Origin: Asterias rubens
Lineage: Eukaryota
NCBI RefSeq assembly: GCF_902459465.1
Contig: NC_047063.1
Location: forward strand, 10,540,001 to 10,604,000
Direction of reading: 5' to 3'
DNA: 64,000 bases
The notes under the pieces were generated by a model. The model was not told the origin of the DNA. It was given only the letters and a program-made list of their open reading frames with translations, and did no database searches. The position numbers were made by a program, and so were the translations under genes. Below, piece after piece: positions 7,501 to 64,000 of this stretch (the first letter of the stretch is position 1; each line of letters begins with the position of its first letter).

Positions 7501-8741
7501 ACGACGTGTGTAGCCAAAGTGTATGTTGTATAAGTGCACGTACCCCATGCACCAACAATGGAATGGGCACGTTGCCATTGCATCGGTCCAAAAGGACCCA
7601 TTAAGGGGAAACCCCTAGTTATGGTGTCATACCGCAATGTCAATTTTGCTTACACCGTCCTGTCAATAAGCCGGGACCAGGAGGAAACCGCATTGCCATG
7701 TCAGGCGTAAATGTAGAGTTCTACCATGATTTACTCCACGCTTATAGTATTTTGAACTTCCGACATTCAAGGCAGGGTACAGACCATGTGAACTTTGTTT
7801 ACAATAAGTGTGACCTTGTACATTCTTTCAGTATCCTGGCAGGCACAATACTATACTACACAGGTCCTATGGGAAGTTGACATTTTGTGTCACAATTTGC
7901 ACACAAATCAAAGAATTATTAAAGTAAAATCTGGACAAGTTTTGAGATGTGCCCCCTTTCATCATATCAAAAGAATTAGACAGAGCAATCTGCATAAAAT
8001 ATAAGATTTTATTATTTTTTCCATTAGGCTATGTACAAATCATGCCTGCGGGAAGTCCAGGCTCTGTGGCTCGTTTGTAAACATGTGATGTCACAGGTCA
8101 CACGTCTATACTTTTGGTAATATATTGTCAAAGACAAGTATTCTCACTGTTTTCCAGGCAGCATGCACAAAACAACAAATCTGTAATATTGAAGTTGGGC
8201 TCGAGTGGTCATCATCGGAAATTGCAAGAAAATAATGAAAGAAAAACACCCTTATAAGACACCCTTGCCGTATAAAACGGCTGTTGAGAAAGGTTTTTTG
8301 CCTGAAACATTTCTAAGATTAAATTTGTGGGTGAAATTATCTCTTGCTCTAAAAATCTATATTATGACTCGAAATATTATTAATCATATTAACATCTCTC
8401 CAGCGATCTCTAGTAAGTTGAAAAACAGAAAGTTAAATAATGAAATTAGAACTTCAATTTAGTGCTTACCTGACTACCAGCTCGTGGCCCCTCTCCGAAG
8501 CAGCGTGAAGCGGACCCGCACCCCACGCCGTATAAAAACCACAAACGCCCCGTCCCTTCCACAGCAGCAACCGCACCATCTCGTAGTTCCCGGTGACGCA
8601 CGCACAAAACAGGAGCGTCTCCTTAGTCTGGGGTGCCCTGTACGCAAGGAGCTGAGCAACTTCATCATCTGGTAACGTAGAGAACACCTTGCGGACGTAC
8701 TTGTGCTCACCTTTCTTAACTGCCGTTAATAGTTCTGACAT
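954..8741 (-). CDS. Ankyrin-repeat protein with Ser-rich linker and C-terminal coiled coil; complement(join(954..1573,2697..2920,8470..8741)), 371 aa
   Basis: Three ORF segments join through GT-AG introns with matching phases: AG|GTAAG at 8470, TTACAG|A at 2920, G|GTGAGT at 2697, TTACAG|AT at 1573. Total 1116 nt, in frame to TAA at 954-956. Ankyrin motifs ETLLFCAC, GPLHAASERGH, DTPLHLAAYRGH, KTALDDA. AATAAA on the minus strand at 155-160 and 164-169. Confidence 0.85.
2438..2678. repeat. Two-copy ~120-bp direct repeat in ankyrin intron 2
   Basis: TCTCTATGATCAGATTTACCCAA...CTGTGTCCGC occurs at about 2463 and 2583. Confidence 0.8.
2697..2920 (-). CDS. Ankyrin gene coding exon 2 (RLLLKHGADINVQTSYGDTPLHLAAYRGH...)
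   Basis: Textbook ankyrin repeats; pyrimidine-rich acceptor CTCCTGTCCATTACAG; donor G|GTGAGT. Confidence 0.92.
2965..3095 (-). mobile_element. tRNA-derived SINE
   Basis: A-box-like TGGTCTAGTTG (3089-3079) and B-box GGTTCGAATCC (3045-3035); a related copy lies at 35762-35880. Confidence 0.7.
3941..4014 (+). mobile_element. Degenerate tRNA-derived SINE head
   Basis: CATGGCCGAGTG A-box-like start and a decayed B-box about 60 nt later. Confidence 0.4.
8470..8741 (-). CDS. Ankyrin gene coding exon 1 (MSELLTAVKKG...ASERGHELVV)
   Basis: ATG at 8741-8739, ankyrin-like translation, donor AG|GTAAGC, ends in phase 2. Confidence 0.85.
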
Positions 8742-10579
8742 TTTAAATAGTCTTGGCGTGGCACCTGGAGATACTCGGTGTTTTACACAGCTTTCCAAAT
8801 TTACGCACCCGCAAGAGTTCGACTGGTGATGTCCGCACATGTTATAAGTTACACCACCATGCAGTCCCGATAACATTGCATTTCTTTATGTTTACAGATA
8901 GTTTCATTCACAAACCTCCCGCTCATAAACATCAACTCGTAGTGGCACTGAGTACAGCAGAGGGCCTTATACCTATGCCGTTGCAGTGACAAATAATACT
9001 TCCGGGTTTTCATAATGGTTCCGCTTGAGTCATGAACCCACACATTGCGTTTACTTGGTGCTTCTTGGAACCGCTATAGTGTGTATATGTATGGTGGATT
9101 GCAAGTAGGTGAAACCCCGAAAAGGAAGTTTATCACCAAAGGTACTATACGAGTGCGTTGTTGCGGCCGTTGCAATCACTTTTTGAGTTGTGGACAGTGG
9201 TAAACAAAAATATCAAGTTTAACCAAAACAGGTTCACGACCGTGAAAAACACACGGGGTCAAATATTGACAAGTTTGTTTTAAAGTTCCAACATATTGAT
9301 TGAATAGACTAATATCAACAAAATAGTGTGCAAAAACTGTACACAATATTTGTATGTACATGTACAATAACGATATTGGCGAAACATGTTTAAATTGATT
9401 TTGTGTTTGGTCCTGTAAGGGGGCGTGGCTAATACTTTATGGATTGTGGTGATTCTTAGCTTTTCACCACTTGATTATAATGTGCTGTTTTGCGAGTGAT
9501 GTTGTTTTCAGCTTTTGTCTTTTTTATATTTCTTGTTTTCTATTTAATTATTTCACGATTGTTATGCGCTTGTTTTAATATGGATTTGTGCAATATAAAT
9601 CATTTTTTAGACAGTTATTTCGTGGGTATGACAACATAATAATCAGCATAACCGCAGGGTTATGATTTTATTTTGTTTGAATTCGGACAAAAAAAACAAA
9701 GAAAGAATCTCGCCAAAAGACAAATATATTGAAGGAGCAAATAAAAAGTAATAAATTAGTCTGAAAGGTTTTTACAATGAAATAACATTTGCAGAAAATT
9801 ATAGGCTATCAAAGTTGAACCCTTGTATTTACGATAGAAGTTTTCCTCTGTACACAAGCATGGAATACAATTTCATAAACTTCCCCATCAGTAACAATGT
9901 TGCTAAGGCCTACATGATATTCATTATTTGAGGAAATTATTTCCAAACACCTGTTCCAACACCTGTCAACATCATGATCTGTTTCAAGAGTGTAGATGTC
10001 ACTGTTGTTTCCGTGTGTTTTGTGTATCGTCGATGTGTGTTATCTTGTCAATCTATGATGAGACTAATGACCTATGTGGATGGCAGTTTGGGGGAAACAC
10101 GTCAACGCTTTCGGCATTCTGTCGTTTCTAATGTGGCATTTTATACGCAGGGTCAAAACTCGGTTATACAATTTACGTAATGTCCACTCGATTTGCAGTA
10201 TCGTTGTCGGCGTGTAAATGGAATAGAATGGTCAGAGTGTAGTTTTTTTTTCTTTCTTTTTTGAAATCTTGAGACTTACACAATAGCTACAGGTTGTACA
10301 GGGGCTGTCAATGTTAAAACATGTATAAAAACTGCCATCAAAAGATGTGTAAAACCAGACCCCTGCCAACGATAACAATATAATTATACAACATAAAAAG
10401 GAGATTGCATGAAACATTTAAAAATCATACAAGAAATCATTAAAACACAAGCAAATCCAGATTATTGAAAGAAGAAAAAAATGAGAAAAAACTGCACCCA
10501 CAACAAAACACCGTGTAGCAATAGGAGGAAGGGACAACAATTTAAAAGCAAAAACCCTAGAATGGACTAAAAACCCCCA

Positions 10580-11460
10580 ACCCACAGAGCCATCCTTACG
10601 GGTACACAGTCGCTACAGTCCCCGGTCGCTACACATCGAGTTACGATGCAAAGTACCTTGGGCACGTTGCACCGATCTCGGTGTTTGATCCCTCGTCGTA
10701 CTTTCCTCAGTCCCATGCCCAGTCTACACCCATTAAGTACTCGTCGACCGATGGTCTGTTAGCAATAGCTCATAACTGATGCCTGAACAACAACGAACTT
10801 TAAATCTGAAATTTCCATCTTGCAATAGTAACTTATCAATCTACTCGTTTTGTATCCCTCAGTGATGTCCCATCCAAAGAATCTCCAAACATTTTCACGA
10901 AGAGTTTGTTTCATCAAATACTTTTTTTAGTTACACCTTAAAGGCACTGGACACTATTGGTTATTGTCAAAGACCAGTCTTTGCTCTTGGTGTATCTCAA
11001 CAAATGCATAAAATAACAAACCTGTAAAAAATTTGAGCTCAATTGGTCGTCGAAGTTGCGAGATAATTATGAAAGAATAAACACCCTTGTCACACGAAGT
11101 TGTGTGCGTTCAGATTGTTGATTTCGAGACCTCATCAAGTTCTAAATTTGAGGTCTCGAAATCAAATTAGTGGAAAATTACTTCTTTCTCGAGACCTGTG
11201 TCTCAGAGGGAGCCGTTTCTCACAATGTTTTATACCATCAACCTCTCCCCATTACTCACCAAGTAAGGTTTTATGCAAATAATTATTTTGGGTAATTACC
11301 AATAGTGTCCACTGCCTTTAATTGAGGATCAAACATTTTCTCATTTTTGAAGAAGTTTAATGTAAATTGAGACATGATTGGTACAAAATGTTGTTTTTTA
11401 CAAAAACATTCAAGTGGTTAACCACTCTTGAGGTATTTTTAAAGCAGCTTGCTAATAATT
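10580..11460 (+). pseudogene. Inverted partial duplicate of homeobox exon 3 (last ~65 codons) plus 3' UTR, interrupted by a MITE
   Basis: Aligns to the reverse complement of about 14609-15099. Two mismatches in the ~198 coding nt; no homeodomain, start codon or acceptor upstream. Confidence 0.9.
10938..11321 (+). mobile_element. Non-autonomous TTAA-flanked TIR element (Kolobok-like MITE), family A
   Basis: TTAA-AGGCACTGGACACTATTGG ... CCAATAGTGTCCACTGCCT-TTAA; the paralogous empty site at about 14737-14740 has a single TTAA. Confidence 0.85.
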
Positions 11461-13076
11461 AAACAACTTAAAAACGTAAACTTGAATGCCTTAATGAAAT
11501 AGAATGACCGAAACGAATCTGAATGAGAAAAAAATTTAACATGTGCGCACGAAACAAAATTGAAGCTGAAATTGGCCGGGAAAAACTATATTTTTTTATA
11601 CGAAATATTCACGACTTTGTCCGAAAATTTACGCACAATAATTGTGGGCTCCAAATCGTAAACAAATTACGTAATGCGGCGATTTGGGGACACTCGTAAA
11701 TATTTGCACGAATAATGTGCAATTGGAGCATAAATCGCAAAATGTTCGATGTCCATAGTGACACAGAACTTGAGCCGGATCAATAAAACCGCTTGGTCAC
11801 GACCTATCAAAATGACCGAGACAATTGAAGAGAAAACATTGACCATATTATTACAGGAAGGCAGGTGAGCTCTAAATACGAATATCGTGGGGTATTCCCA
11901 TGAGGTATTCTAAAACAAAGCATGATTCAACGCTGTCAAAATCACCTTTCCTGTCGCGCGAGCCCCGTCAAATTTCCTCCTCTCTTGCTTTGTGTTCCAA
12001 CCGTGGGTGACTTCTGCAATGTTTTCTCAAATAATAGTATTGATAATACGAGGAAGAGAGAAAATACAAAAGCATCGTCATACACCATTCAATGATCACA
12101 CAGAACAAATTCCTTTATTGTGTTTGACTCACTGGAAGTACATTATTATTACTTTTATAGCTATTTCAGTTTGGTTTGAATAGAAAAACAAACACGGAGT
12201 TTCATTGCTTATTTGATGACCCATCCAGTGTGCTGATATTTATCAAAATAGTTTCATACTTCACAACTTTGTTAAAGCACGCGGGAAATCACAATCCAAA
12301 AATGCTGACAACAATTCTTACTCATTTATAAATTAATAGAGTCACAACCTTTATTTTTACATGATGACAACCCAACCAACATCATGCGTTTTACCTATTT
12401 TTTTATTGACTGTGATACTCCAAAAAGGGGGGGGGGGGTCAGTGCTAACCCGGATTCTGGGTCAGGGGCCCGACCCGTTTCGTGGTCAGGCTGACCCAGC
12501 AAACCAGGTTTGAAGAAGGGAATTTTTAATTTTGTGTTGCATCAGTTACTGGCAAGGATTGACCCAGAATTCGGGTCAATTCTGACCCAATGTTTTAAAA
12601 GCGATTGCATTATATTTTTTAAATGCATTTAATGACAGAAAAATATATATATATAAATTTCTTTGATGGCTCTAACACCACGAATCCGTGTTTTGGTTTA
12701 CCTGTGTAGATCAGCTCTAACCTTGACGTCGTCAAATTATCTTGGTTGCGGGATCTTGGGAGTCAGTAGGCCTATTCCCCAAATTTCGGGGGAAACCCGA
12801 AACACCATTCACTGAACATGAGATTGTATGTTTCACTGTAAATGTACATGTTTTCGCAATCTCGTTTCATCATTATTCTATTGCACGATATTAGATTTTG
12901 TTTTATGTTAAGCTTTGTTGTGACATAAAGCTCTCTGCATATTATCTAAACCATTGTGTGGTAATGTTTTAAGGTTGATGGGGCCCCCGAAATCCCAAAC
13001 ATTTCTTTAACCTCTCTCCCAAGTTGTAGAGTCTTACCAATCCTACTCTATCCAGACATGAACACTGCAGTGTCGT

Positions 13077-13460
13077 TTAAAAGCAGTGTATACTATTGGT
13101 AATTGTCAAAGACTAGCCTTCACAGTTGGTGTATCTCAACATGCATAAAATAACAAACCTGTGAAAATTTGAGCTCAATTGGTCATCGAACTTGCGAGAT
13201 AATAATGAAAGAAAAAAACACCCTTGTCACACGAAGTTGTGTGCGTTTAGATGGTTGATTTCGAGACCTCAAGTTCTAAATCTGAGGTCTCGAAATCAAA
13301 TTCGTGGAAAATTACTTCTTTCTCGAAAACTATGGCACTTCAGAGGGAGCCGTTTCTCACAATGTTTTATACCATCAACCTCTCCCCATTACTCGTCACC
13401 AAGAAAGGTTTTATGCTAATAAATATTTTGAGTAATTACCAATAGTGTCCACTGCCTTAA
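13077..13460 (+). mobile_element. Family A MITE
   Basis: Same TIRs and internal sequence as 10938-11321. Confidence 0.85.
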
Positions 13461-14899
13461 ATATTGTGTCAGTTCTCACTTATAATTCCCAATCCTGTAT
13501 TATTACCTCAATTGTTTTCAAAATCCCTTTTGCCATCGCCAAGAAACTTTGAAGATAGAGGTTTGCGGTAAACACCATGTGAATATTTGACTAATAAGCA
13601 CTGACCATACTTGTCACACTTGTATGTTATAAGTGTACACAAAACTAGTTGAAGTTTGTATGATCTATAATCATAAGCTTCCTATTTCCAGGAACCATAG
13701 TTCAATATATTGTATTATTATTCATATGCGGAAATGATCAACACATTTTTACTTGTGTTTATCTTGTATGATTGTATTTATCTTACAATTTTATGCGGAT
13801 GCTGATCAAGTTATGGGGATGCCCCTACCGTCCACACAAAAAAACCGTTACAACCCTTCGTCAGCACAGCGACTGTTACATAACAGTACCCGTTTACTCA
13901 CTTTGGTTTGTTCTCAAATTTAATACTCGGGGTTGTTTTTTTGCTTAGTAACTCACTCTTATTCATTGCAATAATTATGATGTATTTCTTTTCATGTTTG
14001 CCTTATTCAGTGCCGATATAAAGTGATGTTGAGATAGGCCTACAACAATTTGGATAGGGCTGACCAGTTGTAACATAACTGTTTTACATTGAAATTCACT
14101 ATAATAAATTGAAACTACGGTCAAATCATCTACAGGTTGCTTCAATCGATTCGAACACATTTCAATGTTTAACTCTTATTAGTTTGCTTTGTGAGGCAGA
14201 CTGCGCGATTCCCAAAAGTGTTGTCATACTGTGGTATAGAGGGCGCTATAACAAACGTTGGTGCTGGGCTATTTTATCTGTTTAAAGTTACGAACTTGCA
14301 AAGGCATAAATTATCACCTAATCTATGAGCATTGAGTCGGCCACATATTTCATGTGCATGTAGGTTCAATAAATGTATTTATCCACTACGTTTTAATATC
14401 AAAACATTTATTAACTGCCCCAGTGTAGATACAACAGTCTTAAAAAAAAAATTGAAATATCCTTAGATGTGCGCAATAATTATTGAGGAAACAAACAAAC
14501 AAATAAATATACATGTACAACGTCCATTGATTTGCTTTTAAATATTTTAATAACTCTCTATGATAAACAAACAACGTTACAGTTGAACAATTTTAAGAAA
14601 AAAATCAAATTATTAAGCAAGCTGCTTTGAAAATACCTCCAGGGTGGTTAACCAATCTAAAAAACAACATTTTGTACAAATCATGTCTCAATTTACATTA
14701 AACTTCTTCAAAAATTAGAAAATGTTTGATCCTCAATTAATATGTAGTTAAAAAAGTATTTGTTGAAACAAACTCTTCGTGAACATGTTTGAAGATTCTT
14801 TGGAATGGGGACATCACTGAGGGATACAAAATGAGTAGATTGATGAGTTACTATTGCAAGATGGAAATTTCAGATTTAAAGTTCGTTGTTGTTCAGGCA

Positions 14900-15421
14900 T
14901 CAGTTATGAGCTATTGCTAACAGACCATCGGTCGACGAGTACTTAATGGGTGTAGACTGGGCATGGGACTGGGGAAAGTACGACGAGGGATCAAACACCG
15001 AGATCGGTGCAACGTGCCCAAGGTACTTTGCATCGTAACTCGATGTGTAGCGACCGGGGACTGTAGCGACTGTGTACCCGTAAGGAGGGCTCTGTGGGTG
15101 AGCACTGCTGCCGTAATTCAGCCCGTAGTACCCGTAGCTGTACGACGGCACCATGGTGTACTGATCGTAGGGGAGGGAGGAGAGCCCGTAGTAGGGAGAG
15201 GTAGCACTTGGTGAGCTGACGCCTGTTGTGAGATCGTCGGAGCCAACAGGGGATGCTGAGGTTGAAGGTGATAAGTGGTTAGTCTCGGATGGCTTGGGTG
15301 TTGTTGTTGGCGTTACCGCTGATTCATCACCATCCTCGCTGCTTGATGAATCGATCAGCTTCCCTGTGCTGTTAGGACGCCCATGACGACGGGTCCTAGC
15401 ACGGCGGTTCTGGAACCAAAC
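14900..15421 (-). CDS. Homeobox gene exon 3 (VWFQNRRAR... Ser/Pro/Tyr-rich C-terminus)
   Basis: Acceptor TTTTGTCTACCAG|GTTTGG, open to TGA at 14900-14902; minus-strand AATAAA at 14407-14412. Confidence 0.92.
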   Translation of the reverse strand, partial: VWFQNRRARTRRHGRPNSTGKLIDSSSSEDGDESAVTPTTTPKPSETNHLSPSTSASPVGSDDLTTGVSSPSATSPYYGLSSLPYDQYTMVPSYSYGYYGLNYGSSAHPQSPPYGYTVATVPGRYTSSYDAKYLGHVAPISVFDPSSYFPQSHAQSTPIKYSSTDGLLAIAHN

Positions 15422-17236
15422 CTGGTAGACAAAAATAGACAGAGACTTATTAAGCATGTTTACATTTACGTCTATATATAACAACAGCAGCTAATCCATT
15501 TAGCCGGAGGTGTGAGGTAGAACATTAGATGGATTAAAGGGTAATGAGAAAAATCAATTTGGCTGAACTGTGAGAGGTGTCACAGACGAGGAATATCGAC
15601 AGGATAACAAGATGTGCTAAATGTCTGCCATCGATTTAAGGCATTATAACCTCTGCTGATAATCGACCATTTTCTAAGTAACGATTATTCCAATCCAAAG
15701 TTAAACACTTTAAGCGGCAGACTTGTTTAATCCTTGATCTATAATAAACTGTCAGAAATGCTAGGGCTTGTTTTCATGGAATGAAAAACCGCAAGTACGA
15801 AGTACAAAATCAGATCTCATCGCGTCTGCCATGATTGGGAATTAAGGATAGAAAATAAGGTTTCGAGCAAATTTTGTTTTAGCGATTTGTTGCTTGGGAG
15901 AAGAACAAAAATCACAGGTGCGCATCAATCACTTTGGTTACAAGTTACTGACATTTAATTGAAAGAACACATTGGAGATGTGTATTTTTGAAGTAATGTT
16001 TGTACAGTATAACAGAGAAAGAGGGAATTTTTCACCCACAAATCTTCCTCTGACACAACCAATTAATTGTGCAACAAGAGTGTTTTCCCCTTTTCTTGCA
16101 ACTTCGATACCAGTAGATAGTGAGCCTAAGAATGTTCGTTTTTGTCTTGAATGTATCATCACTGAAGAATTCCTTGAGGTTAGGTTAAAAGGAATTTCTA
16201 AGATCTAGAATTTATAGATTTGTTAAATCTGAGGCGGTAAGTAAAGATTACAGACATGATATTTACCTGCACTCTTGCTTCAGACATACCGATAGATTCT
16301 GCAAGCACTTCCCTGCTGGTTATATCGGGGTACTGATCGTCAGTGAAGAACACTTCGAGCTGTTGCCGCTGGTCTTCAGTGAAGATGGTGCGGGCACGGC
16401 GACGGCGTTTCCTGAGCGGGCCGCTCCCGGTAGACTCGGCGGGGCAACTAACGATGTGAACGGCGGCCTGTTCAGCTGCTGAAAAGGATAAAGGTGATTT
16501 TTGTTAATGAAGTTATCGTCTGGCGGTTTATAAGGGCAGGTTGGGAAAAAACACCAGGGAAATATTACCCTTGTAAATGACGAGCGTTACATACATGATC
16601 CATGGTCAAAATCCAGTTTTAGCAAAGGGTCTTTAAACACCTGTATCTACTGCATGAAAGGGAAAAACATCACGGTTTGTAGTCTGAAAACTTACCGATT
16701 AAATGCAAGTTCATACGTTTTTATCGAAAAAGAAAACATTTGATCACATTTGATTACGACAACCATGGAGGTAGAAATAGACCCCAAATGGTACAGCCAC
16801 AAATTGATTAATGTTATCTAATACATGCTGGAAAATACGGTTATTAACTATTTTTTTCTTGAATCACACGACGGGTTTATTTATAAGTATCTTCTGTCTT
16901 GACTCTATCTATGATATATCCACTCAAATGAACCCAGCAGTGATGGTGAATATTGTGTCAGCTCACATGTATTACTACCTCATTTTGTTTTTAAAATCAA
17001 TGTTGCCCTCGCCAAGAACTGTGAAAATAGAATCCCACATTGCTTTCTCTTAAAGTGTTGCGTGGCTTCAATTTTCTTTTTATAAATTGATAAATTAGGC
17101 GCTTTGGGTTTAAAAACCAGGGTTAAACTGAATTACCTGTATTGGAATTCCCTGTCTTTATGCCAAGGATGTCTTCTATCAGATGACCAGCTTTCCTTTT
17201 CACAACGCAAGACTTGACTGATCGCGTGCTCTCCAT
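14900..17236 (-). CDS. PRD-class Q50 homeobox gene, Pmar1/Phb-like; complement(join(14900..15421,16267..16478,17137..17236)), 277 aa
   Basis: Spliced homeodomain RRRARTIFTEDQRQQLEVFFTDDQYPDITSREVLAESIGMSEARVQ|VWFQNRRARTRRH, with the intron at the PRD-typical position between residues 46 and 47. QYPDITxRE and NRRAR resemble echinoderm Pmar1/Phb as I recall them. All splice sites are canonical and in phase; 834 nt. Paralog identity is not determinable by eye. Confidence 0.88.
15492..15733. promoter_or_regulatory. Cluster of three TAATCC (K50 homeodomain/Otx-type) sites in intron 2
   Basis: TAATCC at 15492-15497, GGATTA at 15531-15536, TAATCC at 15728-15733. Motif match only. Confidence 0.4.
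16267..16478 (-). CDS. Homeobox gene exon 2 (homeodomain residues 1-46); absent from the ORF track because it has no start codon
   Basis: Manual translation of the reverse complement; acceptor CCTTTTCAG, donor CAG|GTAAAT. Confidence 0.92.
17137..17236 (-). CDS. Homeobox gene exon 1 (MESTRSVKSCVVKRKAGHLIEDILGIKTGNSNT) with eh1-like HLIEDIL
   Basis: ATG at 17236, donor G|GTAATT at 17137, phase 1 matches exon 2, about 100 nt downstream of a TATA/Inr. Confidence 0.75.
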
Positions 17237-17329
17237 GATACAGATTAATGTTATAAGAAGACCCGAATGCAACTGGTGGTAGTAGAAGAGCAAGTTGCGG
17301 AAGACTGTAGAGATGTAGAAACTCAATGA

Positions 17330-17470
17330 GTGAATGATACAGGCTGAGGACATGAGGCCGCTTTTATAACTACCCCTACCAGGTCAGCCGGGCCCTTTGA
17401 TTCATTCATGAGACCCCAAATAAGGTGCCGTCCTCGGTTGCTGATTGGTCGAGCGTAGTCTTTGAAGTCA
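17330..17470 (-). promoter_or_regulatory. Proximal promoter of the homeobox gene
   Basis: TATAAAA at 17368-17362, Inr-like TCATTC at 17337-17332 about 30 nt downstream, CCAAT at 17448-17444, TCF/LEF-type CTTTGAT at 17395-17401 and CTTTGAA at 17460-17466. Confidence 0.65.
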
Positions 17471-17965
17471 CCGCCTGAAGGCGGTCCGTGCCCCATTGAC
17501 TGAACGCGGGCGTGCGAGTACTGCGAAAGAACACTGGGGCTGTAAATTACCAAGAAAACAGATAGTGATACCGTTGAAAGCCTTGAAGGGTTTATGAGAA
17601 GATTAGTTACTGATACCCGTTGGCGAATTGTTTGGGGTGATTGAAAATTAAAACCAACAACATCTCGTTTCTGATTTGGTATCCGCCATTTTCGGTGTTG
17701 GAGGGTTGCGCTCCATATTCTGATCACTGTTCCAATACTCTTGTATTTTCTTAGAAGTCATATCCTAACCATAATCCTATACCTCTCACAGTGTGTAAAT
17801 CACGAGGGTTTTCGAACGAATAGTGGGGTTGAATCAGAGATGAAGATATGCCTCTGTGACTTTATTTTTGTGTGAATTATTTAGCCTTTATTACTTTTGG
17901 TTAGTTTTGTGTAGGCCGATGGAACAAAGACTGACCAATGCTGGGTGGTAGGCCTATCTTGGCCC

Positions 17966-18335
17966 TTAAAACCACTGGACACTATTGGTAATTGTCAAAA
18001 AAAAACGGTCTTCTCACTTGGTGTATCTCAACTGAAAAATTTGAGCTCGATTGGTGGTGGGAGTTGCGAAATACTCTATGAAAGAAAAAATACCCTTGTC
18101 ATTCGATGTTGTGTGCTTTTAAATGCTTGGTTTCAAGACCTCAAATTCTAAACTTGAGGTCTCGAAATCAAATTCGTGGAAAATTACTTCTTTCTCGAAA
18201 ACTGCGTCACTTCAGAGGGAGCTGTTTCTCACAATGTTTTATACTATCAACCTCTCCCCATTACTCGTTAGCAAGTGAGGTTTTACGTTTATAATTATCT
18301 TGAGTAATTACCAATAGTGTCCACTGTGCCTTTAA
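17966..18335 (+). mobile_element. Family A MITE about 600 bp upstream of the homeobox TSS
   Basis: Same TIRs and body. Confidence 0.85.
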
Positions 18336-20519
18336 GCACTGCATGGAACAAGTTAGGATGTAATTGATTATGATAGAGAAGGCATTTGTTCAAATATTCG
18401 TGGAATGACCACTACTGAGTTGACCACTAGATAGCGCGTGTGAAAAAAATTATGAACATTCCAAAATATCGGAAATACCTTTAAAAATTACTGATAATAT
18501 TACCACCGGCCAAAATCTATGTGCAACAGTTCGGTCGTAATTTGACCGATCAGGAAGTGGTTGCCTAAGGAAGGGGGCCTACCCTTTTCTTGGTCAGCAG
18601 GACCCGTCAAAACACACAATTGACCGGGAGTCCTGTGTACTGGTCAGTCTCCATTTCAACATGGAACATTGGAGCCCGGAAATATGCGGGAAAACCCCTG
18701 CTCTCTCACATATTATGATATTATCTGTGACGTCATAGAAATATTTACAAAAGAGCCATAGCCTGGACTTCGTGCAGGCACGATTTGTACACAGCTCAAC
18801 GGAAGTTAACAATGGAAGTTTGTACATTTTTGAAGAAAGAGGACACATCTCAAAACTTGAACAGCAGTTGTTATTTTTTGTCTCTTGAATATTTGTTGAC
18901 ATTATGACACAAAATGTATAATTAACCTTAGCAGTGATGGCTATCGGGTCAGGGAATGACCTGGAATTTACGAGGCAAATTGTTTTACATAAAAAGCCCA
19001 AAGCGATCGTTTTGAAATCAATATGGTTGGACAGATACTTTTTAAAGTTGAATTCAAATATTCAGATAATTATCCCTTGTTTTGGTGTAATTCCATTTAA
19101 CAGAATCCGCTATTTTGTAGAGCCAAATTGTTGTCTCCAAGATTAAAATGGCCGAGCGAGTGCTCCACTGGTTGTATTACAAACGGCAAATAAATGCTTT
19201 TGCAATCACTACTCACTATTTACAGGTGTTTGCTTGTTGCACAAACAAATCTGAAAAAGTAAAAGGAGCGATTCCAAATAGAATATTTTTAGAAGGTGCG
19301 AATGCAATGTGCCATCCCGAGGTGTACATTCTCGAATCGTCAAGTATTTCTTGGAATTGTTGATCTTCATAAAATTATGAGTTTTACGCATGCATATATA
19401 TCTGGAGCCGGGGTCATGCTACACGCAGTACCATTCAGGTTGCACTTTATACCGGGACAGAGGGTGAATATCCTTACACAGTTTCTGATTTTGGTTTTCT
19501 GAAATCTAAGAAAATCACAAGTAGGCTAAATCGTGAATCTACAAGCCTCATCACTGTCCCACCTCCAGTCCTCATTCCAAGAACTCTGCCATTGCAGACT
19601 TAACTGCCGCTATCAATTGTCTTTGTTGATCAAGGCAGATACACTTTTTTAATGGTCTTTTCGAGACCAATCTGTATCAACTTGAAAATGTGCATTTGTG
19701 ATATGTGGCTTCAAACGGATTGACTAAGTTTAAGGCTAGATCCCAATTTCAAATAGTTTGCTAAGCACAACAAAAATTGTGCTTACCAGATTAAGGTTAT
19801 AAGCAATATTTTCTGCATACAAGCCGCTTTTTAAAACTAAACGCCCATCAATGACACGCGAGTTGTCACCCAGTCCTTTGACGCCCGTTCCGCTAAAAAA
19901 AATTGACAAACTTTTAGGACCCACTTTGTGGCTGCATCCAAGGGTGTTTTCCCCGCAATCCTTCAAGACAATGGTGCCATAAATTGGCTTAACACCCTTA
20001 GATGCTTTGTATGGTTTACAGATTGGTTCTAACCCAAGAAGTTTGCCCACCTTTACAAGAAGGTTCGCGGTTGACTGGTTCGGTGTACATGTGTAAGGAG
20101 CATACGTAGCGGTTCCACTGATGTCTTAATTGATTTGTCCGGGTAAAGGGTTCACCGCGCGCGTGCTTCCTCCTTCATGTTTGCCGCATCTGCTTGGGTG
20201 TTTTCATCAAAGGGTGGTATGGGCCTATACGACTAACTCTGTATGGGTGGTGCATACTGACTGTGAAAGCTTTCTTTCAGCTTTTGTAGGTTGTGCTATT
20301 TTGGTTAGAACTGCCATAAGCTCAAATCATGGAGGTAGAACTCCATGCTCAAATTCACAACCAGTTCGAACTGCAGCCATTTTAGAAATCTATTAAAAAT
20401 GTGTTTTGTATTCAGGGGGTATCTATTAATAACCAACCAGCCAATTTGCGAAACAGAGAACAATTGTATTTGTTTTATTAAGACATGCCTTTTAGGAAGA
20501 CCAAACCTGCTGGGGGCCA

Positions 20520-20902
20520 TTAAAGGCAGTGGACACTATTGGTAATTGTCAAAGACCAGTCTTCTCACTTGGTGTATCTAAACATATGCATAAAATAACA
20601 AACCTGTGAAAATTTGAGCTCAATCGGTCATTGGACTTGCGAGATAATAATGAAAGAAAAACACCCTTGTCACACGCAGTTGTGTGCGTTTAGATGGTTG
20701 ATTGACCTCAAATTCTAAACTTGAGGTCTCGAAATCAAATTCGTGGAAAATTACGTCTTTCTCGAAAACTATGGCACTTCAGAGGGAGCTGTTTCTCACA
20801 ATGTTTTATACCATCAACCTCTCCCCTTACACGTTACCAAGAAAGGTTTTATGCTAATAATTATTTTGAGTAATTACCAATAGTGTCCATCACTGCCTTT
20901 AA
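20520..20902 (+). mobile_element. Family A MITE
   Basis: TTAAAGGCAGTGGACACTATTGG ... CACTGCCTTTAA. Confidence 0.85.
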
Positions 20903-21354
20903 GCAACATTTGCTGCCATTTTACTCATGACAGTCGAAATTAAAAGTCAAATGAGGCAAACGACCTTTATTACTTCGTGTTCGCAAAAGCTAAACGTTTT
21001 TCGCCGAGGTATGATATTTTGTTAACGAATATGCCACTAAGAATTGGCAACCTCCATGGGTCAAATCTGCGAATGATTGCGTCTGCTGATGGCCACCGCG
21101 AAGCACTACTTCTTGGAAACCATTTCAGGGTTTAGGATTTTACTAAAAAGAATATTCTATATTTGAACCTTCGGCGAAAAGCAATCCGGAAGTTTGTTCC
21201 AGCCCTGTTTTTGGTGTTCTTAAAAACACCATAATTTCTACGCCTGTGTTCGCTTTTACGCCCTGTATTAGTGTAGTGTTGTATAATGAATACGAGATTT
21301 TTGTCGCATAAATTCTTCTTCCCGTGAAGGGGATGAAGTTTTTACCTCCATGGT

Positions 21355-28136: not shown

Positions 28137-28521
28137 GACGATAGTGGACACTATTGGTAATTACTCAAAATAATTATTAGCATAAAACCTTACTTTGTAA
28201 CGAGTAATGGAGAGATGTTGATAGTATAAAAGATTGCGAGAAACTGCTCCCTCTGAAGTAACTAACATAGTGTTCAAGAAAGAAGTAATTTTAAACAAAT
28301 TTGATTTCAAGACCTCGCTAGATTTTGAGGTCTTGAAATCAAACACATCTGAAAGCACACAACTTCGTATGACAAGGGTATTTTTTCTTTCATTATTATC
28401 TCTAAACTACGACGACCAATTAAGCTTAAACTTTCACAGGTTTGTTATTTTTTGCATATGTTGATACACCTAGTGAGAAGACTGGTCTTTGACAATTACC
28501 AATAGTGTCTAGTGTCTTTAA
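28137..28521 (-). mobile_element. Family A MITE, reverse orientation
   Basis: Same TIRs, body inverted. Confidence 0.8.
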
Positions 28522-28699
28522 GTACCGACTGAAACTGAATGATCACACACACAGAGAATACCCCCAAGGGAAAGGGCGGGAAATGTGGGCGAGGATCCCT
28601 GGTGGAGGGGACCACCCGTTCCCGGTCAGTACTGTACATCTTTAGAAAATAAGTACTTGGTAAATTCATACATGTACATATCTGTTCACTCATCTAAAT

Positions 28700-33929: not shown

Positions 33930-34480
33930 AACGATCATAGCAAGTATGAATAGACATGCCTGAAGTTTCAGTCGGACTTAAAGAACTTGCTTTGTGAACA
34001 TTTTTAAAACAATGTAGGTCATCTGTAACACAGAGGCATTCAGTGAAGTTACATGTTCCTTCTGAGTGGGTTCGGAAGACATTTCAAAACGTCTTACCTC
34101 ATCACCTTTAGTTTCTCATCACTGCTGTGTCCGTTTTGGTGAAGTGGTCGACATTTACGGCGTCTGCAAGATATAGACAATTGTTTGTGGAACCCACATT
34201 TTGATGACTTTGGTTAAGTGGGCAGCTAGATGTACTCATTTATTTGTGACATGACTACATTGAGTCTAAACTCGGATCTTGTAAATTCCTATTCAAAACC
34301 GGAAAGGAGAAACATTGTGATTGCTTGTTTTCTGTTGGTTCGGGTTACCACCAGCCTAGTTGCTGATGCAAACATTTGGTGTGGTCAGTCGTGGTGGGCG
34401 GAGCCTATTTACCACTCCTCTTTTGTCATGTATTTTGAGAATTCTATAATTATCATAATTGACCTGAAGAACATTGTGCC

Positions 34481-34866
34481 TTAAAGACAGTGGACACTAT
34501 TGGTAATTGTCAAAGACTAGTCTTCACAGTTGGTGTGTCTCAACATATGCATAAAATAACAATCCTGTGAAAATTTTAGCTCAATCGGTCGTCGAAGTTG
34601 CGAGATAATAATGAAAGAAAAAACACCCACGTCATACAAAGTTGTGTGCTTTCTGATGCTTGATTTCGAGACCTCAAATTCTAAACTTGAGGCCTCGAAA
34701 TCAAATTTGTGGAAAATTACTTCTTTCTCGAAAACTACGTCACTTCAGAGGGGGTTGGGTCTCACAATGTTTTATACTATCAACCTCTCCCCATTACTAG
34801 TAATCAAGAAAGGTTTTATGATGATTATTATTTTGAGTAATTACCAATAGTGTCCACTGCCTTTAA
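34481..34866 (+). mobile_element. Family A MITE present only in duplication unit B
   Basis: TTAA-flanked; absent from the colinear part of unit A. Confidence 0.85.
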
Positions 34867-35213
34867 ATTTGTTCCAATCGTTGCTGATAAATAAATTTAA
34901 ACATTTTTAAAGATAAATTTACCATTTATAGCCCTTTCATAACAGGGTGCTGTTTGAGGGTGTGAAGTCAGCAAGGGGGCCCATTATTACATGTGAACTT
35001 TGAGCCTTTGTAATAATCACACTGGTCACACATTTAAATTAAACTAAGGGTCTTTAAAATTACCATCTTAGATTTGATTGTAATTGTTTGAATGAGAATC
35101 GATGATACTAAAATATACACATGAAGACTGTTGGTTAACTGTCAATAAATTATCCTTGTATCAGTTCATAATGAGTTCATACTGTCAACCGCTAACTTCA
35201 CTGGTACATGCCC

Positions 35214-35578
35214 TTGAAGGGAAGGTACACGTTTGGTAATTACCCAAAACAAATGTTAACTTAAAAACTGACTGGGTAACAAGCATTGGAGAGCTGTTGA
35301 TAGTATAAAGCATTGTGAGAAACGGCTCCCCCTGAAGTACCATAGATTTTGAGAAAGAGGTAATTTCTCACTAAAACAATAAAAGACTTTTATTCCTATC
35401 TGAAAGCACACAAATTTGTCTAACAAGGGTGTTTTTTTCTCTCATAATTTTCTCGCAACTTCGATGACCAATTTAGCTCAAACATTCACAGGCTTGTTAT
35501 TTTATGCTTATGTAAGGATACACCAACAAGTGAGAAGACTGGTCTTTGACACTTGCCAAATGTGTACCTTCCCTTTAA
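35214..35578 (-). mobile_element. TTAA-flanked MITE, AGGGAAGGTACAC subfamily
   Basis: TIRs AGGGAAGGTACAC ... GTGTACCTTCCCT. Confidence 0.8.
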
Positions 35579-35761
35579 AGGCCGGTGTTTAATGCTGAAC
35601 AGTTGGTCCTGAAAATGAGGCCAGTGATGCGAGTAACTCATGACAGCACAAGTCTGGCAGTAATATGTTTTCATCTAATAAATGTTTAAAATACCTATTA
35701 AATCGTTGCGGTAGCCGCGGCTAAAACATAGGATTTGAACTGACTCTAGCTATCAGGCATA

Positions 35762-36285: not shown

Positions 36286-36661
36286 TTAAAGGGAAGGTAC
36301 ACGTTTGGTAATTACTCAAAACAAATATTAACTTAAAAACTGACTTGGTAACGAGCATTGGAGAGCTGTTGATAGTATAAAACATTTTGGCAAACGACTC
36401 CCTCTGAAGTAACATAGTTTTAGAGAAAGAGGTAATTTCTCACTAAAATAATAAAAGACTTCTAGCTAGAAGTCTTTTATTCCTATCTAAAAGCACACAA
36501 ATTCGTCGAACAAGGGTGTTATTTCTTTCATCATTTTCTCGCAACTTCGATGACCGATTGAGCCCAAATTTTCACAGGTTTGTTATTTTATGGTTATGAT
36601 GGGCTACACCAAGTGAGAGCACTGGTCTTTGGCAATTACAAAACGTGTACAGTGCCTTTAA
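36286..36661 (-). mobile_element. TTAA-flanked family A-related MITE
   Basis: TIRs and body homologous to 35214-35578. Confidence 0.8.
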
Positions 36662-37128
36662 TGATGAAATTCCATTTGTGTAATTTTAATTTCTTATGTA
36701 TCTTTACTTGTTTTCTACACAGCTAGAAAGCGTATCAATGAGATTCAACAAAGTGGACATGGCTGTAGCTGGACGTCAACCTAGCATGAAAACGGCTCTT
36801 CCGCTAGTGTTAGCCCTCTGATGGTCCCCTGTGGCCTATCATTGGCCCTCTGTTGGCTGCTGATGGTGAACCACCTGGATCTGTCAGACCTTTGTGCCTG
36901 CGGGCCACTAGTTGCAGCCCTCTGATGGTCCGCTGTTTGTCGTTGATCTGCCCTCTCTTGGATGCTGACAGTGGACCACCAGCGAGCCGGCAGATGTATG
37001 TGTCGGTGTTCCGCTAAGGTTGTCTGCTGTTGCCTATCATTGGCCCTCTGTCAGCTGGTGACAATGGACATACTTGGATCGGTCGGAAGTTTGTGCTGGT
37101 GGTCCGCTAGTGGCAGCCCACTGATCGC

Positions 37129-52651: not shown

Positions 52652-55600
52652 AGATTGCGCGCCGCCGTGCTGTGATTCGTGTGAGACCAGACATGTGCAT
52701 GACAAACTTTGAAGATAAAGTATGTGCATAAAATTTGAATAGTTATTAAATTTGATCAAGGAACTTGAATAAGTTAATGCCTAAATATTTATAAATCAAG
52801 TGAACAAGTTGCCCACAATCAATCATTTGGACACACAGGGCGATTCAAAAATGAGTTGTTTAAGAGCTCTTTCAAGGCCATTGGTAAAGCGTGGGATAAA
52901 ATGTGGATCATGAAACTTTATCGATAAAAGTATGATAATGAATTTGTCATCAAAAACAATTTTTTGGGAAGAGATAATCTTTCACATAATATGTAGAATG
53001 ATATACACTTAGTGAACAAATTGTGCAGACTATTCCCTTCCACTATTGGTAATTAATCAAAACCATTATTAGCATAAAACCTTACTTGGTTACGAGTAAC
53101 GAGGAGAGGTTGATAGATTAGTATAAAACATTGTAAGAAACGGCTCCCTCTGAAGTAACTAGTTTTCGCGAAAGAAGTAATTTCCACGAATTTGATTTGA
53201 TGAGACCTCAGATTTAGAATTTCGTGTAACAAGGGTGTTTTTTCTTTCACTATTATCTCGCAACTTCGACGACCGATTGAGCTGAAATTTTCCTAGGTTT
53301 GTCATTTTATACATATTTTGAGATACAGCAAGTGAGATGACTGGTCTTTGACAGTTACCGATAGTGTCCACTGTCTTTAACTATTACCAATGTTGTGGTG
53401 ATGCTTGAACACATGCATTGTACATGCCTTCCTACTCCTGCTGATAGGGGTGCAATTTAATGAGACAATTTAACTCAGTATGAACTAGATTAACTATTGC
53501 ATGCAGGCAATGGTCCATTTATGCCAGGCATATTTAAATTGAGACTGAGAAGAACAATTTTCTACATCTACGAGTGAAATATGAAAAAAATTAAAAATTA
53601 AAAAAATTTAGGGGGGGATCAAATGTGGTTTTGATTTTGACACCCTGCAAATCTCTGCTGTGAAACCAAAGTGAATGAACTGATGCGTTCAAGGGCCAAA
53701 GATTTCACCGATTGTGGACTCTCAACCAAAGCTGCACTGGTGGTGCATAATTCTGCAAGAGGGCTTTGATGAGGCCCAAACATACATGTGTTGCTCCTAT
53801 ACAATGAGTCTATAATAAAAAATAAAAAATAAAATGCTGAACAGTGTGCTATTTTTCAAGCTCTGAAGTATATTCCAAATGTCTTCCATGAAAAGTAATG
53901 TTAGAAATTATTTCCATAACTCTGCAAGATACTGAGATTTCCATTGTTTTGTTAAATAAACCGCTCTTTGAAAGGGGTGTTACAAGGCAGTAAGGCAGTG
54001 CTTGCGCTCTATGAGTGAACGGCGGGCATTGTAAACGGATAGCGCACACGCACTGCCACACTGTCTTGCAACACCCCTTTTACGTCAACCCAGTAGGCTG
54101 GTACCTGCGTTTTAGCGCTTGGTGACCAAAAAATAAAGCGTTGAACATATCGGGAAGTCAAAAAGCGTGCAAGGTTCACATATCAAACTGGTAAGTTCTA
54201 GTCCTTTTTCTTCAAAATATTTTCTCAATGGTGTTATGAAAGGATTCAGATTGCGCGCCGCCGTGCTGTGATTCGTGTGAGACCAGACATGTGCATGACA
54301 AACTTTGAAGATAAAGTATGTGCATAAAATTTGAATAGTTATTAAATTTGATCAAGGAACTTGAATAAGTTAATGCCTAAATATTTATAAATCAAGTGAA
54401 CAAGTTGCCCACAATCAATCATTTGGACACACAGGGCGATTCAAAAATGAGTTGTTTAAGAGCTCTTTCAAGGCCATTGGTAAAGCGTGGGATAAAATGT
54501 GGATCATGAAACTTTATCGATAAAAGTATGATAATGAATTTGTCATCAAAAACAATTTTTTGGGAAGAGATAATCTTTCACATAATATGTAGAATGATAT
54601 ACACTTAGTGAACAAATTGTGCAGACTATTCCCTTCCACTATTGGTAATTAATCAAAACCATTATTAGCATAAAACCTTACTTGGTTACGAGTAACGAGG
54701 AGAGGTTGATAGATTAGTATAAAACATTGTAAGAAACGGCTCCCTCTGAAGTAACTAGTTTTCGCGAAAGAAGTAATTTCCACGAATTTGATTTGATGAG
54801 ACCTCAGATTTAGAATTTCGTGTAACAAGGGTGTTTTTTCTTTCACTATTATCTCGCAACTTCGACGACCGATTGAGCTGAAATTTTCCTAGGTTTGTCA
54901 TTTTATACATATTTTGAGATACAGCAAGTGAGATGACTGGTCTTTGACAGTTACCGATAGTGTCCACTGTCTTTAACTATTACCAATGTTGTGGTGATGC
55001 TTGAACACATGCATTGTACATGCCTTCCTACTCCTGCTGATAGGGGTGCAATTTAATGAGACAATTTAACTCAGTATGAACTAGATTAACTATTGCATGC
55101 AGGCAATGGTCCATTTATGCCAGGCATATTTAAATTGAGACTGAGAAGAACAATTTTCTACATCTACGAGTGAAATATGAAAAAAATTAAAAATTAAAAA
55201 AAATTTAGGGGGGGATCAAATGTGGTTTTGATTTTGACACCCTGCAAATCTCTGCTGTGAAACCAAAGTGAATGAACTGATGCGTTCAAGGGCCAAAGAT
55301 TTCACCGATTGTGGACTCTCAACCAAAGCTGCACTGGTGGTGCATAATTCTGCAAGAGGGCTTTGATGAGGCCCAAACATACATGTGTTGCTCCTATACA
55401 ATGAGTCTATAATAAAAAATAAAAAATAAAATGCTGAACAGTGTGCTATTTTTCAAGCTCTGAAGTATATTCCAAATGTCTTCCATGAAAAGTAATGTTA
55501 GAAATTATTTCCATAACTCTGCAAGATACTGAGATTTCCATTGTTTTGTTAAATAAACCGCTCTTTGAAAGGGGTGTTACAAGGCAGTAAGGCAGTGCTT

Positions 55601-56034: not shown

Positions 56035-57057
56035 AAGTTTCCGTATGGCGCCACCACTTTTTCATTCAGTATGAAGTAATATAGTATTCATAAATACCCA
56101 AGTCAGTTTCTCTACTCCTATTGGTGGAGAGCGCATCACGTGGGTGTGCATAAACCTTTTGTTGATGACCGGTAAAAGTGTTAATTCATGGACGTGACAC
56201 GAGACCTTGCACCTGTTCTTATAAGACAGTTTCTTCATTCCTATTGGTTGAGAGCAACGGCTGAAACAGTTGTGCCACATCACGCGAAACGCGCACAACA
56301 TTCCCTTATAAGGAGTTGTTTACGCAAGGGCAGCGAAGGGCTCTACCATTTCATAGCTGGAGGGGTGTTGTGTTGAAAGAAATCATTAAACAATTATAAT
56401 TTTTGCATTTATTTTACTTTTTGACCAACAAGTGATGATGTTTTTGACCGAAAAGGTATTTATTAATGGGAATCAAAGTGTGTTGAATCGGTTTTCAACT
56501 AGTGGTTTAAACCCGCTGAGGCCTGGTTCTTTATAATTTACCTTAACTTCGTCTCGGTAAATTATCAAGAACCAGGCCTCGTTGGAATTAAACCACTAAT
56601 TGAAAACCTCTTCACCACACATTGATTGCCTTATTTAAAGACATTGGACACTATTGGTAATTGTCAAAGACTAGTCTTCACAGTTGTTGTATCTCAACAT
56701 ATGCATAAAATAACAAGCCGGTGAAAAATTGAGCTCAATCGGTGGCGACGTGCGGAAGATTATCCGAAAAAACACCCTTGTCGCACGAAGTTGTGTGCTT
56801 TCAGATGGTTTGATTTCGAGACCTCAATTCTTAATCTGAGGTCTCGAAATCAAATTCGTGGAAAGTACCTTTTTCTCGAAAATTACGTCACTTCAGAGGG
56901 ACCTGTTCTCACAATATTGTATACTATCAACCTCTCCCCATTACTAATTGTTATCAAGAAAGGTTTATGATAATAATTATTTTGAGTAATTACCAATTAG
57001 TGTCCACTGCCTTTTTGTAAAATTTAGTGAAAAAGTGGTGGCTCTATACGGAAAGTT
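56035..57057. mobile_element. Family C TIR element containing a hairpin repeat (56468-56630) and a nested family A MITE (56635-57014)
   Basis: Outer TIRs TTTCCGTATGGCGCCACCACTTTTT / AAAAAGTGGTGGCTCTATACGGAAAGTT. Confidence 0.7.
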
Positions 57058-62517: not shown

Positions 62518-62866
62518 TTAAAGGCACTGGACATGTTCGGTAAATGTCAAAGACCAATATTCACACATCCCAACATAATTTTATGCATAAAATGATATAT
62601 CTGTGAAAATTTTGGTTCATTTGGTCATCGAAGTTACAAGAAAATAATGAAAGAAATAACACCCTTGTTGCACAAAATTTGTGCTTTCAGATGCCTGAGA
62701 AAGGAATAAGCCTTTTACAGACTCAAATATTTGAGTGAGTTATTACCTCTTTCTGAAAAACTAGTTCAGAGAGTCTCACAATATTTTATACTATCAACAG
62801 CTCTCTGTTGCTCGTTACCAAATAAGTTTTATGCTAATATGTTTTGAAAAATTACCAAACGTGTCC
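62518..62866 (+). mobile_element. Degenerate family A-related MITE
   Basis: TTAAAGGCACTGGACATG ... TTACCAAACGTGTCCAG. Confidence 0.7.
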
Positions 62867-64000
62867 AGAAACTTGGATTGGGCAATTTTGCCTATTAAAA
62901 GCACTTGAAACATTTGTTATGTTAAAATGGTTGGAAAGATGTTTTTCAAAAGTATAACAATGATTCACACAATATGCCTATGTGGTTTCCCTTTTACTAC
63001 GTGAACTAACACCATCCGCCATTTTGTGGAGTCAAAAACTTTGTTCTACAAAATGGCGGACTGTGTTAGTTCACAAAGTAAAACCACACAATTGCAGCAA
63101 AGTGTATTGCGTGGATCATCTTGATTTGTAAAACCAAAATAGCTCAATCCAAGGTAACGTGTCCCTTTAATTTTTCCCCAGGGGTCTTTTCTGCCTTTCT
63201 TAAAGCAGTTTCTGAAGGTTAAACAAAACAATGAACAAAACAAAATTGGGGTGAGGAAATCAAGCAAAATGAGTCCCTTTCGACCAAAGTAATTTTTAGT
63301 TTTTTTATACATTAGAAGAGGGCATAATCCATGTTTTAATACTGTTAAAACCTTGTGTCGATACCATATTTAGTTCAAAAGTTGTGAAAGTAGAAAAACC
63401 AAGTTATGCAAAAGAACGTAGCGCATTGTTTTTTCAATGCTAATTTTAATTCCGAGTTGATGTTTTTTTAACAGGAAGCTATGTTGTCCAAAATAAAACA
63501 AGAGATATTTGGCCTTTAAAATATATACAAACATATTTTTGAAAATATATTGACCTGTTTTGGTTTGTTTCTCCATACTGATAGTTTCGACCCATTTACA
63601 GCATCACTATTATCTTTAGTTTTACCTTTATAGATCAAAGTTGCACATTAAGTAGATCCCTCATGGTAATGCATGTAACACAAGTATGAAGACGCATCAA
63701 CATCAGGTTCCCAGAGCGCCACCTCCTTGGAAAAATTAGATCATCCCAGCTGCAGGTCAGCATGTATCAAACTGCTGTGAAATAATGAGTTACTGTTAAC
63801 AGGATTTTTTTTACATAAAAGGGGCTTTCAACAGTATAATGGCAAACGAAATAAGGAAACACTCATGTGTATTAATAAAAGAGTTCTAAAAACGGCTGTT
63901 TATCATCGCCAGGGTTGGGCTGTGTAATAAAGTCCCAAGGTACAGGCCTTTATCCCAGAGCCACAACCCTACAAGGTTTTTAACAGTCGTTTAAGAACGA

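Follow-up and report, generated by a model that had tools for sequence, protein, structure and literature searches.

The 64-kb stretch of Asterias rubens DNA analyzed here (NC_047063.1, positions 10,540,001 to 10,604,000; referred to as the window and free of runs of N) carries a paired-class homeobox gene on the minus strand and, facing it across a spacer of roughly 3.1 kb, an inverted copy of the 3' end of the same gene. We consider it probable that this copy is a lineage-specific pseudogene fragment that arose by inverted duplication, was formerly kept similar to its parent by gene conversion up to a barrier formed by a miniature inverted-repeat transposable element (MITE), and has since drifted neutrally without any function. 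The observations behind this reading are the structure of the duplicate, its presence in two species of Asterias and absence from two outgroups, a step in the pattern of variable sites along the arms, a neutral level of divergence, and the RNA profile across the locus.

The structure was determined by repeat search and global alignment. Two blocks pair in inverted orientation, 10580-10937 (+) with 15099-14741 (-) and 11318-11460 (+) with 14740-14608 (-). Identity between the arms is 99% over the first 292 nt and 92-98% in the later blocks, which also contain indels of 11 nt and 1 nt. A first-pass annotation of the same DNA had described an inverted duplicate of the homeobox gene's 3' end around a spacer of about 3.1 kb; both alignments, the corresponding region of A. 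amurensis and an independent DNA run (X7) confirmed this description. The annotation had given both arms a length of about 490 bp. This value applies to the right arm, which belongs to the gene and measures 492 nt, but not to the left arm, which measures 881 nt because a 376-bp MITE, an interruption that had gone unmentioned, is inserted in it. The spacer (11461-14607, 3147 nt) contains no open reading frame of note. No homology was detected past either arm end (z ~0), and a larger eroded palindrome beyond the arms was looked for and not found. Likewise, blastn and tblastn recovered no further gene copies or homeobox relics in the window.

The copy falls entirely inside exon 3 of the parent gene. 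It reproduces the final 65 codons (residues 213-277) together with the stop codon, here at 10777-10779, and roughly 290 nt of the 3' untranslated region (UTR); alignment and translation showed that the coordinates originally given for this convergent copy were correct. Its coding part differs from that of the gene by one Pro-to-His replacement and one synonymous change. The copy has neither a start codon nor a plausible splice acceptor, and an in-frame stop is located nine codons upstream. It is split by the 376-bp element (10942-11317), which has inverted termini. The motif TTAA occurs once in the gene arm (14740-14737) and is duplicated in the copy, where it stands on both sides of the element (10938-10941 and 11318-11321). 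Thus, the insertion was classified as a TTAA-targeting MITE. A second copy of this MITE is present in the spacer.

The same arrangement occurs in A. amurensis. At the corresponding locus (L001), the gene arm is located at 12103-12597 and the inverted copy at 16472-15584, with the MITE (15724-16113) at the same TTAA, an identical breakpoint in the middle of exon 3, and the ankyrin-repeat gene beyond. The spacer aligns colinearly between the window and A. amurensis, and an inversion of the spacer between the two species was rejected on these grounds. In DNA run X7, whose source organism carries A. amurensis-type changes in exon 3, one contig leads from unique DNA into the copy (10438-10609), another connects the MITE end via the inner arm with the spacer (11301-11972), and a contig bounded exactly by the arm (14749-15099) occurs at about twice the single-copy depth. 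The difference of 1-3% between the arms is within the range of allelic divergence and would be compatible with an artefact of the assembly, for instance a haplotype fragment placed at the wrong site. However, a separately assembled genome of a second species displays the same structure, MITE and breakpoints, and contigs of an independent run span the junctions. An artefact was therefore rejected, and we assign practically no probability to it.

In Patiria miniata (L002) and Acanthaster planci (L003), neither the copy nor a second homeobox was found within 10 kb on either side of the gene. In Acanthaster, the gap between the homeobox gene and the ankyrin-repeat gene is about 6 kb, as in the window, and nothing is called between them. 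Based on the absence from Patiria and Acanthaster and the presence in A. amurensis, we concluded that the duplicate arose in the Asterias lineage before the window species and A. amurensis split and that it is not the relic of an ancient paralog. The split itself corresponds to a substitution divergence of 3.7-5.2% in neighboring non-coding DNA. In a further run (X3), exon 3 (15057-15412) had a word depth of about 66 compared to 10-20 in flanking single-copy DNA, and a contig on the copy had a depth of about 90; this excess is due either to RNA mixed into the library or to extra copies of exon 3 in that organism.

The history of the two arms was read from a four-arm alignment comprising gene and copy from both the window and A. 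amurensis, in which a difference between gene and copy was scored as paralog-specific if common to both species. Within the outer 347 nt, no paralog-specific difference occurs. One clear and one ambiguous difference are species-specific, with both arms changed together (columns 163 and 297, respectively), and the private changes number 5 in the window copy, 2 in the window gene, 6 in the A. amurensis gene and 1 in the A. amurensis copy. The last 10 nt before the MITE together with the inner 133 nt harbor 9 paralog-specific substitutions and 2 indels, and no species-specific difference. The step from 0 in 347 nt to 9 in 143 nt is significant (Fisher p = 1.3e-5), also when the inner 133 nt are taken alone (p = 0.0015). 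Judging from the aligned sequences, this pattern points to past arm-to-arm gene conversion that was halted at the MITE, which would have acted as a conversion barrier. On the simplest reading, the duplication has about twice the age of the speciation. At synonymous position 14972, the mRNA of another individual (RNA run X4) carries T, the base that is confined to the copy in the window; this variant, shared by the X4 gene and the window copy, hints at a later exchange. Four of the gene/copy differences found in both species cluster in the 10 nt preceding the TTAA of the MITE (10928-10937 versus 14750-14741) and may represent a scar of MITE insertion or of its repair. Between the species, the two copies diverge by 3.1-3.5%, as compared to 3.7-5.2% in the neighboring introns and intergenic DNA. 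The copy accordingly diverges at about the neutral rate, and thus no constraint on it is apparent.

These patterns would be accounted for by the following course of events. Through a local inverted duplication, a segment of about 490 bp that extends from the middle of exon 3 to approximately the end of the 3' UTR would have been placed 3.1 kb downstream, after Asterias had split from the Patiria/Acanthaster lineage and before the window species split from A. amurensis. A TTAA-targeting MITE would then have inserted into the UTR part of the copy. In the 347 bp outside the MITE, arm-to-arm conversion with the gene would have continued up to about the speciation, while the 143 bp at and beyond the MITE would have been excluded from this exchange and would have diverged. 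After the speciation, the copy would have drifted at about the neutral rate. Some points weigh against this account. Frequent recent conversion would leave sites at which both copies have changed together, and as one or two such sites are present, conversion since speciation is weakly supported. In addition, about 7.5 private changes would be expected in the 347 nt of the A. amurensis copy, which has acquired a single one (Poisson p = 0.005); this low value is not fully explained, and neutral drift by itself does not account for it. Finally, the conclusion that the copy has no function draws on the assembled contigs of one expressing RNA run (X4).

The copy belongs to a known kind, that of partial inverted gene duplicates or pseudogene fragments, and appears to behave as a miniature palindrome with past conversion. 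Like the palindromes of sex chromosomes, it consists of inverted arms around a unique spacer that are real in the genome, it shows no fixed differences between the arms over 347 bp although the duplicate predates speciation, and homogenization halts at a block of non-homology, here the MITE. Unlike those palindromes, it is tiny (0.5-kb arms) and pairs the 3' end of a gene with a truncated fragment, and conversion seems to have largely ceased, with one or two concerted sites since the species split.

The parent gene has three coding exons on the minus strand (17236-17137, 16478-16267 and 15421-14900). The junction of exons 2 and 3 is borne out by RNA contigs of runs X4 and X15, which cease to match at the exon boundary and continue beyond it. 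The product of 277 amino acids has a paired-class Q50 homeodomain (Pfam Homeodomain, E = 4.7e-21), an eh1-like motif in its N-terminal part, and a C-terminal tail that is conserved among starfish. Its nearest named relatives are paired-like proteins (Arx, Phox2 and Prop1-like). The top match is a protein of A. amurensis (97% identity), followed over the full length by proteins annotated as 'prophet of Pit-1-like' in Patiria miniata (43%) and Acanthaster planci (41%). The Patiria miniata protein (P0002; 43% identity, 100% coverage) is the best full-length match outside Asterias, and outside the homeodomain identity to the valvatid proteins is just 41-43%. Two phb genes, phbA and phbB, have been described in Patiria pectinifera, both of which peak sharply at mid-blastula and then drop more than 200-fold, to below 0.5% (PMC8505446). 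Exon 2 of the gene in the Patiria relative carries the published qPCR forward primer for Pp-phbA at 19 of 20 bases (PMC8505446), and the parent gene is therefore putatively of the phbA type, an assignment of orthology that draws on best match, primer and synteny and not on a tree. Like the phb/pmar1 genes of echinoderms, the parent gene encodes a paired-class Q50 homeodomain, and it reaches very high depth in one RNA run. The first coding exon of the ankyrin-repeat gene is located at 8466-8876 (-), 1.7 kb beyond the copy and on the strand of the homeobox gene. The order from the homeobox gene to the ankyrin-repeat gene is kept in A. amurensis and Acanthaster planci.

With regard to its origin, the copy could derive from the homeobox mRNA, either as a retrocopy truncated at its 5' end or as a piece of captured cDNA, which would alter the proposed history in this respect only. 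In common with 5'-truncated processed pseudogenes, it is a 3'-terminal mRNA fragment within a single exon, its inner boundary (14608) is no more than about 15-20 nt away from the end of the mRNA as estimated from runs X15 and X4, and A-rich DNA follows (in the copy, A makes up 62% of the next 21 nt). The flank preceding the copy is equally A-rich, however, so that the A-rich tail is unspecific, and no clear poly(A) tract is present. The copy also differs from processed pseudogenes in that no significant target-site duplication flanks it: the best match between the flanks was no better than that obtained with shuffled sequences (p = 0.22 for the window and 0.11 for A. amurensis). Moreover, homology ends right after AATAAT (14614-14609), the sole candidate poly(A) signal, and not at a cleavage site 10-25 nt further on. 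The copy also adjoins its parent, and random retroposition to a site 3.1 kb from the parent is very improbable, whereas this distance is expected of a local rearrangement of the DNA. We therefore favor an inverted duplication at the DNA level and regard a retrocopy as unlikely.

The first-pass annotation had read the copy as a remnant of a tail-to-tail paralog. In the form considered here, a complete phb paralog in convergent orientation would have lost its other exons by deletion, and the copy would be all that is left of it. The existence of both phbA and phbB in Patiria pectinifera (PMC8505446) and the convergent orientation of the copy would fit such a paralog. This proposal was not supported by comparison with the other genomes. 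Using tblastn and blastn, no trace of a homeodomain or of exons 1 and 2 was found elsewhere in the window or in L001. Neither Patiria nor Acanthaster has a second homeobox within 10 kb to either side of the gene, and Acanthaster retains both the gene order and the size of the gap observed in the window. In both Asterias species, homology breaks sharply in the middle of exon 3 at the same base. A paralog remnant is thus highly improbable, and a local inverted duplication of a part of the gene is the preferred explanation.

Transcription across the locus was followed mainly in run X4, which was taken as an RNA run because it yielded spliced contigs. These contigs carry no strand information, lose rare variants, and do not separate the copy from the mRNA arm, which is far more abundant. 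Word depth in X4 was about 2376 over exon 3 and the proximal UTR, 41 over a single contig at 13854-14639, and 9 over intron 2. Over the remaining spacer, leaving out bins affected by repeats, the signal was patchy with depths of 0-7, the last contig being located at 11597-11820. Beyond the copy (10001-10200) the depth was 0, and a small signal at 10401-10600 was attributed to a dispersed repeat. The 3' end of the main mRNA is located at about 14590-14622, as a contig of run X15 stops at 14622 and the depth in X4 falls at about 14590-14615. The contig of 41-fold depth stops near 13854, downstream of ATTAAA (13924) and AGTAAA (13898), and for this reason looks like a minor isoform with a long UTR (about 1.7%). 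In RNA run X15, which is from an A. amurensis-like organism, the mRNA alone was observed. The other RNA runs contained MITEs only; the fraction of about 0.11 of spacer words found there represents MITE and not spacer. Steady-state RNA approaching the copy hence amounts to at most about 0.1-0.2% of the mRNA signal in X4, and nothing was detected past the copy. No gene is called over the copy at L001 of A. amurensis. The copy lacks both a start codon and a splice acceptor, and neither a gene call nor RNA of its own was found for it; most likely, it therefore has no function.

It had also been suggested that read-through of the homeobox transcript would yield an RNA carrying both arms that folds into a long hairpin. 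Concerning stability, this suggestion holds, as such an RNA would fold very stably: the arm duplex has a predicted energy of -660 kcal/mol over 350 nt (97% identity) and includes perfectly paired stretches of 114 and 126 bp. The read-through transcript itself is not supported by X4, where depth is low in the distal spacer and nil past the copy. An off-switch based on this structure would operate by read-through into the antisense copy, pairing in cis or in trans with the mRNA 3' end, and processing by Dicer or ADAR, and would thereby shut down a transcription factor that is expressed transiently. Apart from the stable duplex, such a switch would be in line with the sharp mid-blastula peak and subsequent fall of phb transcripts in Patiria (PMC8505446), with the RNA in X4 downstream of the main 3' end and its traces as far as 11597, with the persistence of the structure through a speciation, and with the hairpin RNA (hpRNA) loci of Drosophila that were born from copies of their targets (bioRxiv 10.1101/2021.08.05.454923). 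However, the signal in the distal spacer is patchy and amounts to about a thousandth or two of that of the mRNA, unique DNA past the copy gives none, and the stretch of 41-fold depth ends where a long-UTR isoform would end. In addition, the copy evolves about neutrally between the species, one third of the stem has decayed and is broken by the MITE, and no compensatory pattern was seen. RNA interference by long double-stranded RNA (dsRNA) is not known to be an established pathway in echinoderm embryos, which we also counted against an off-switch. We thus regard the hairpin or small interfering RNA (siRNA) idea as physically possible but unsupported, and an off-switch as quite unlikely. Given these limits of the contigs, which also would not reveal rare or small RNAs, the X4 profile weakens the idea but does not refute it. 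A more elaborate version is a self-limiting device, in which a small share of polymerases reads through to the copy while the gene is very strongly transcribed in the blastula, the antisense RNA pairs with phb mRNA 3' ends, the dsRNA triggers degradation and so helps to end the pulse, and conversion keeps the guide matched; this we consider very unlikely.

A precedent is given by the hpRNAs Nmy and Tmy of Drosophila simulans, which originated from Dox genes and silence them (bioRxiv 10.1101/2021.08.05.454923). Like hpRNA loci, the locus described here is an inverted repeat derived from a copy of a protein-coding gene, and the outer arm has the near-perfect, extended complementarity to the target mRNA that characterizes them. 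At hpRNA loci, a single dedicated transcript includes both arms, and siRNAs have been documented in abundance. Here, by contrast, the target gene itself forms one of the arms, a distance of 3.1 kb that includes the poly(A) site of the gene separates them, and no transcript over the copy was seen in the RNA contigs. What the copy shares with Nmy and Tmy is solely that a gene was copied in inverted orientation.

If the copy is a drifting pseudogene fragment, its practical effects would be an occasional exchange of variants with the 3' end of the gene and a purely latent capacity for dsRNA formation. The locus would then provide a small and well-dated example of how an inverted gene fragment evolves, by conversion at first, followed by a transposon block beyond the insertion and then by neutral decay. 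An RNA off-switch for a key early endomesoderm regulator would, if true, matter far more, because control of the endogenous siRNA type is not known to be established in echinoderm embryos, but it has no positive support. The C-terminus of the A. amurensis gene is altered and ends with AIAK (L001 12290-12299), whereas the A. amurensis pseudo-copy (L001 16283-16290) retains the ending AIAHN of the window gene (14900-14910). The fragment therefore preserves the ancestral state, that is, C-terminal codons that have since changed in the A. amurensis gene.

Table 1. Positions of the homeobox gene, its inverted partial copy and associated elements in the window.
Feature	Position	Strand	Content
Copy, outer part	10580..10937	+	Codons 213-277, stop codon 10777-10779, first ~158 nt of the 3' UTR
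TTAA-flanked MITE in the 3' UTR of the copy	10938..11321	.	Element 10942-11317, TTAA duplicated at both ends
Copy, inner part (distal 3' UTR)	11322..11460	+	Fixed gene/copy differences common to both species, among them an 11-nt insertion
Spacer	11461..14607	.	Second MITE at 13077-13462; 14607 to ~13854 looks like a minor long 3' UTR
Gene arm	14608..15099	-	Last 65 codons, stop codon 14902-14900, ~290 nt of the 3' UTR
Parent homeobox gene	14900..17236	-	3 coding exons, 277 amino acids

The MITE found in the copy belongs to a family of TTAA-flanked elements of about 376 bp with at least 14 copies or fragments in the window. Apart from fragments elsewhere, copies are located at 10942-11317, 13077-13462, ~17961-18338, 20515-20905, 28143-28522, 34479-34872, 35213-35583, 36286-36663, 56635-57025 and 62518-62867. 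A search for structured RNA families (Rfam) across 9000-18500 gave no match above threshold; two sub-threshold mir-3036-like matches fell in MITE copies. The family reaches enormous word depth in both DNA and RNA runs, and contigs of it also occur in marine metatranscriptomes. Two further copies, at 53041-53380 and 54637-54976, have identical BLAST scores and are spaced 1596 nt apart, which suggests a recent tandem duplication of about 1.6 kb.

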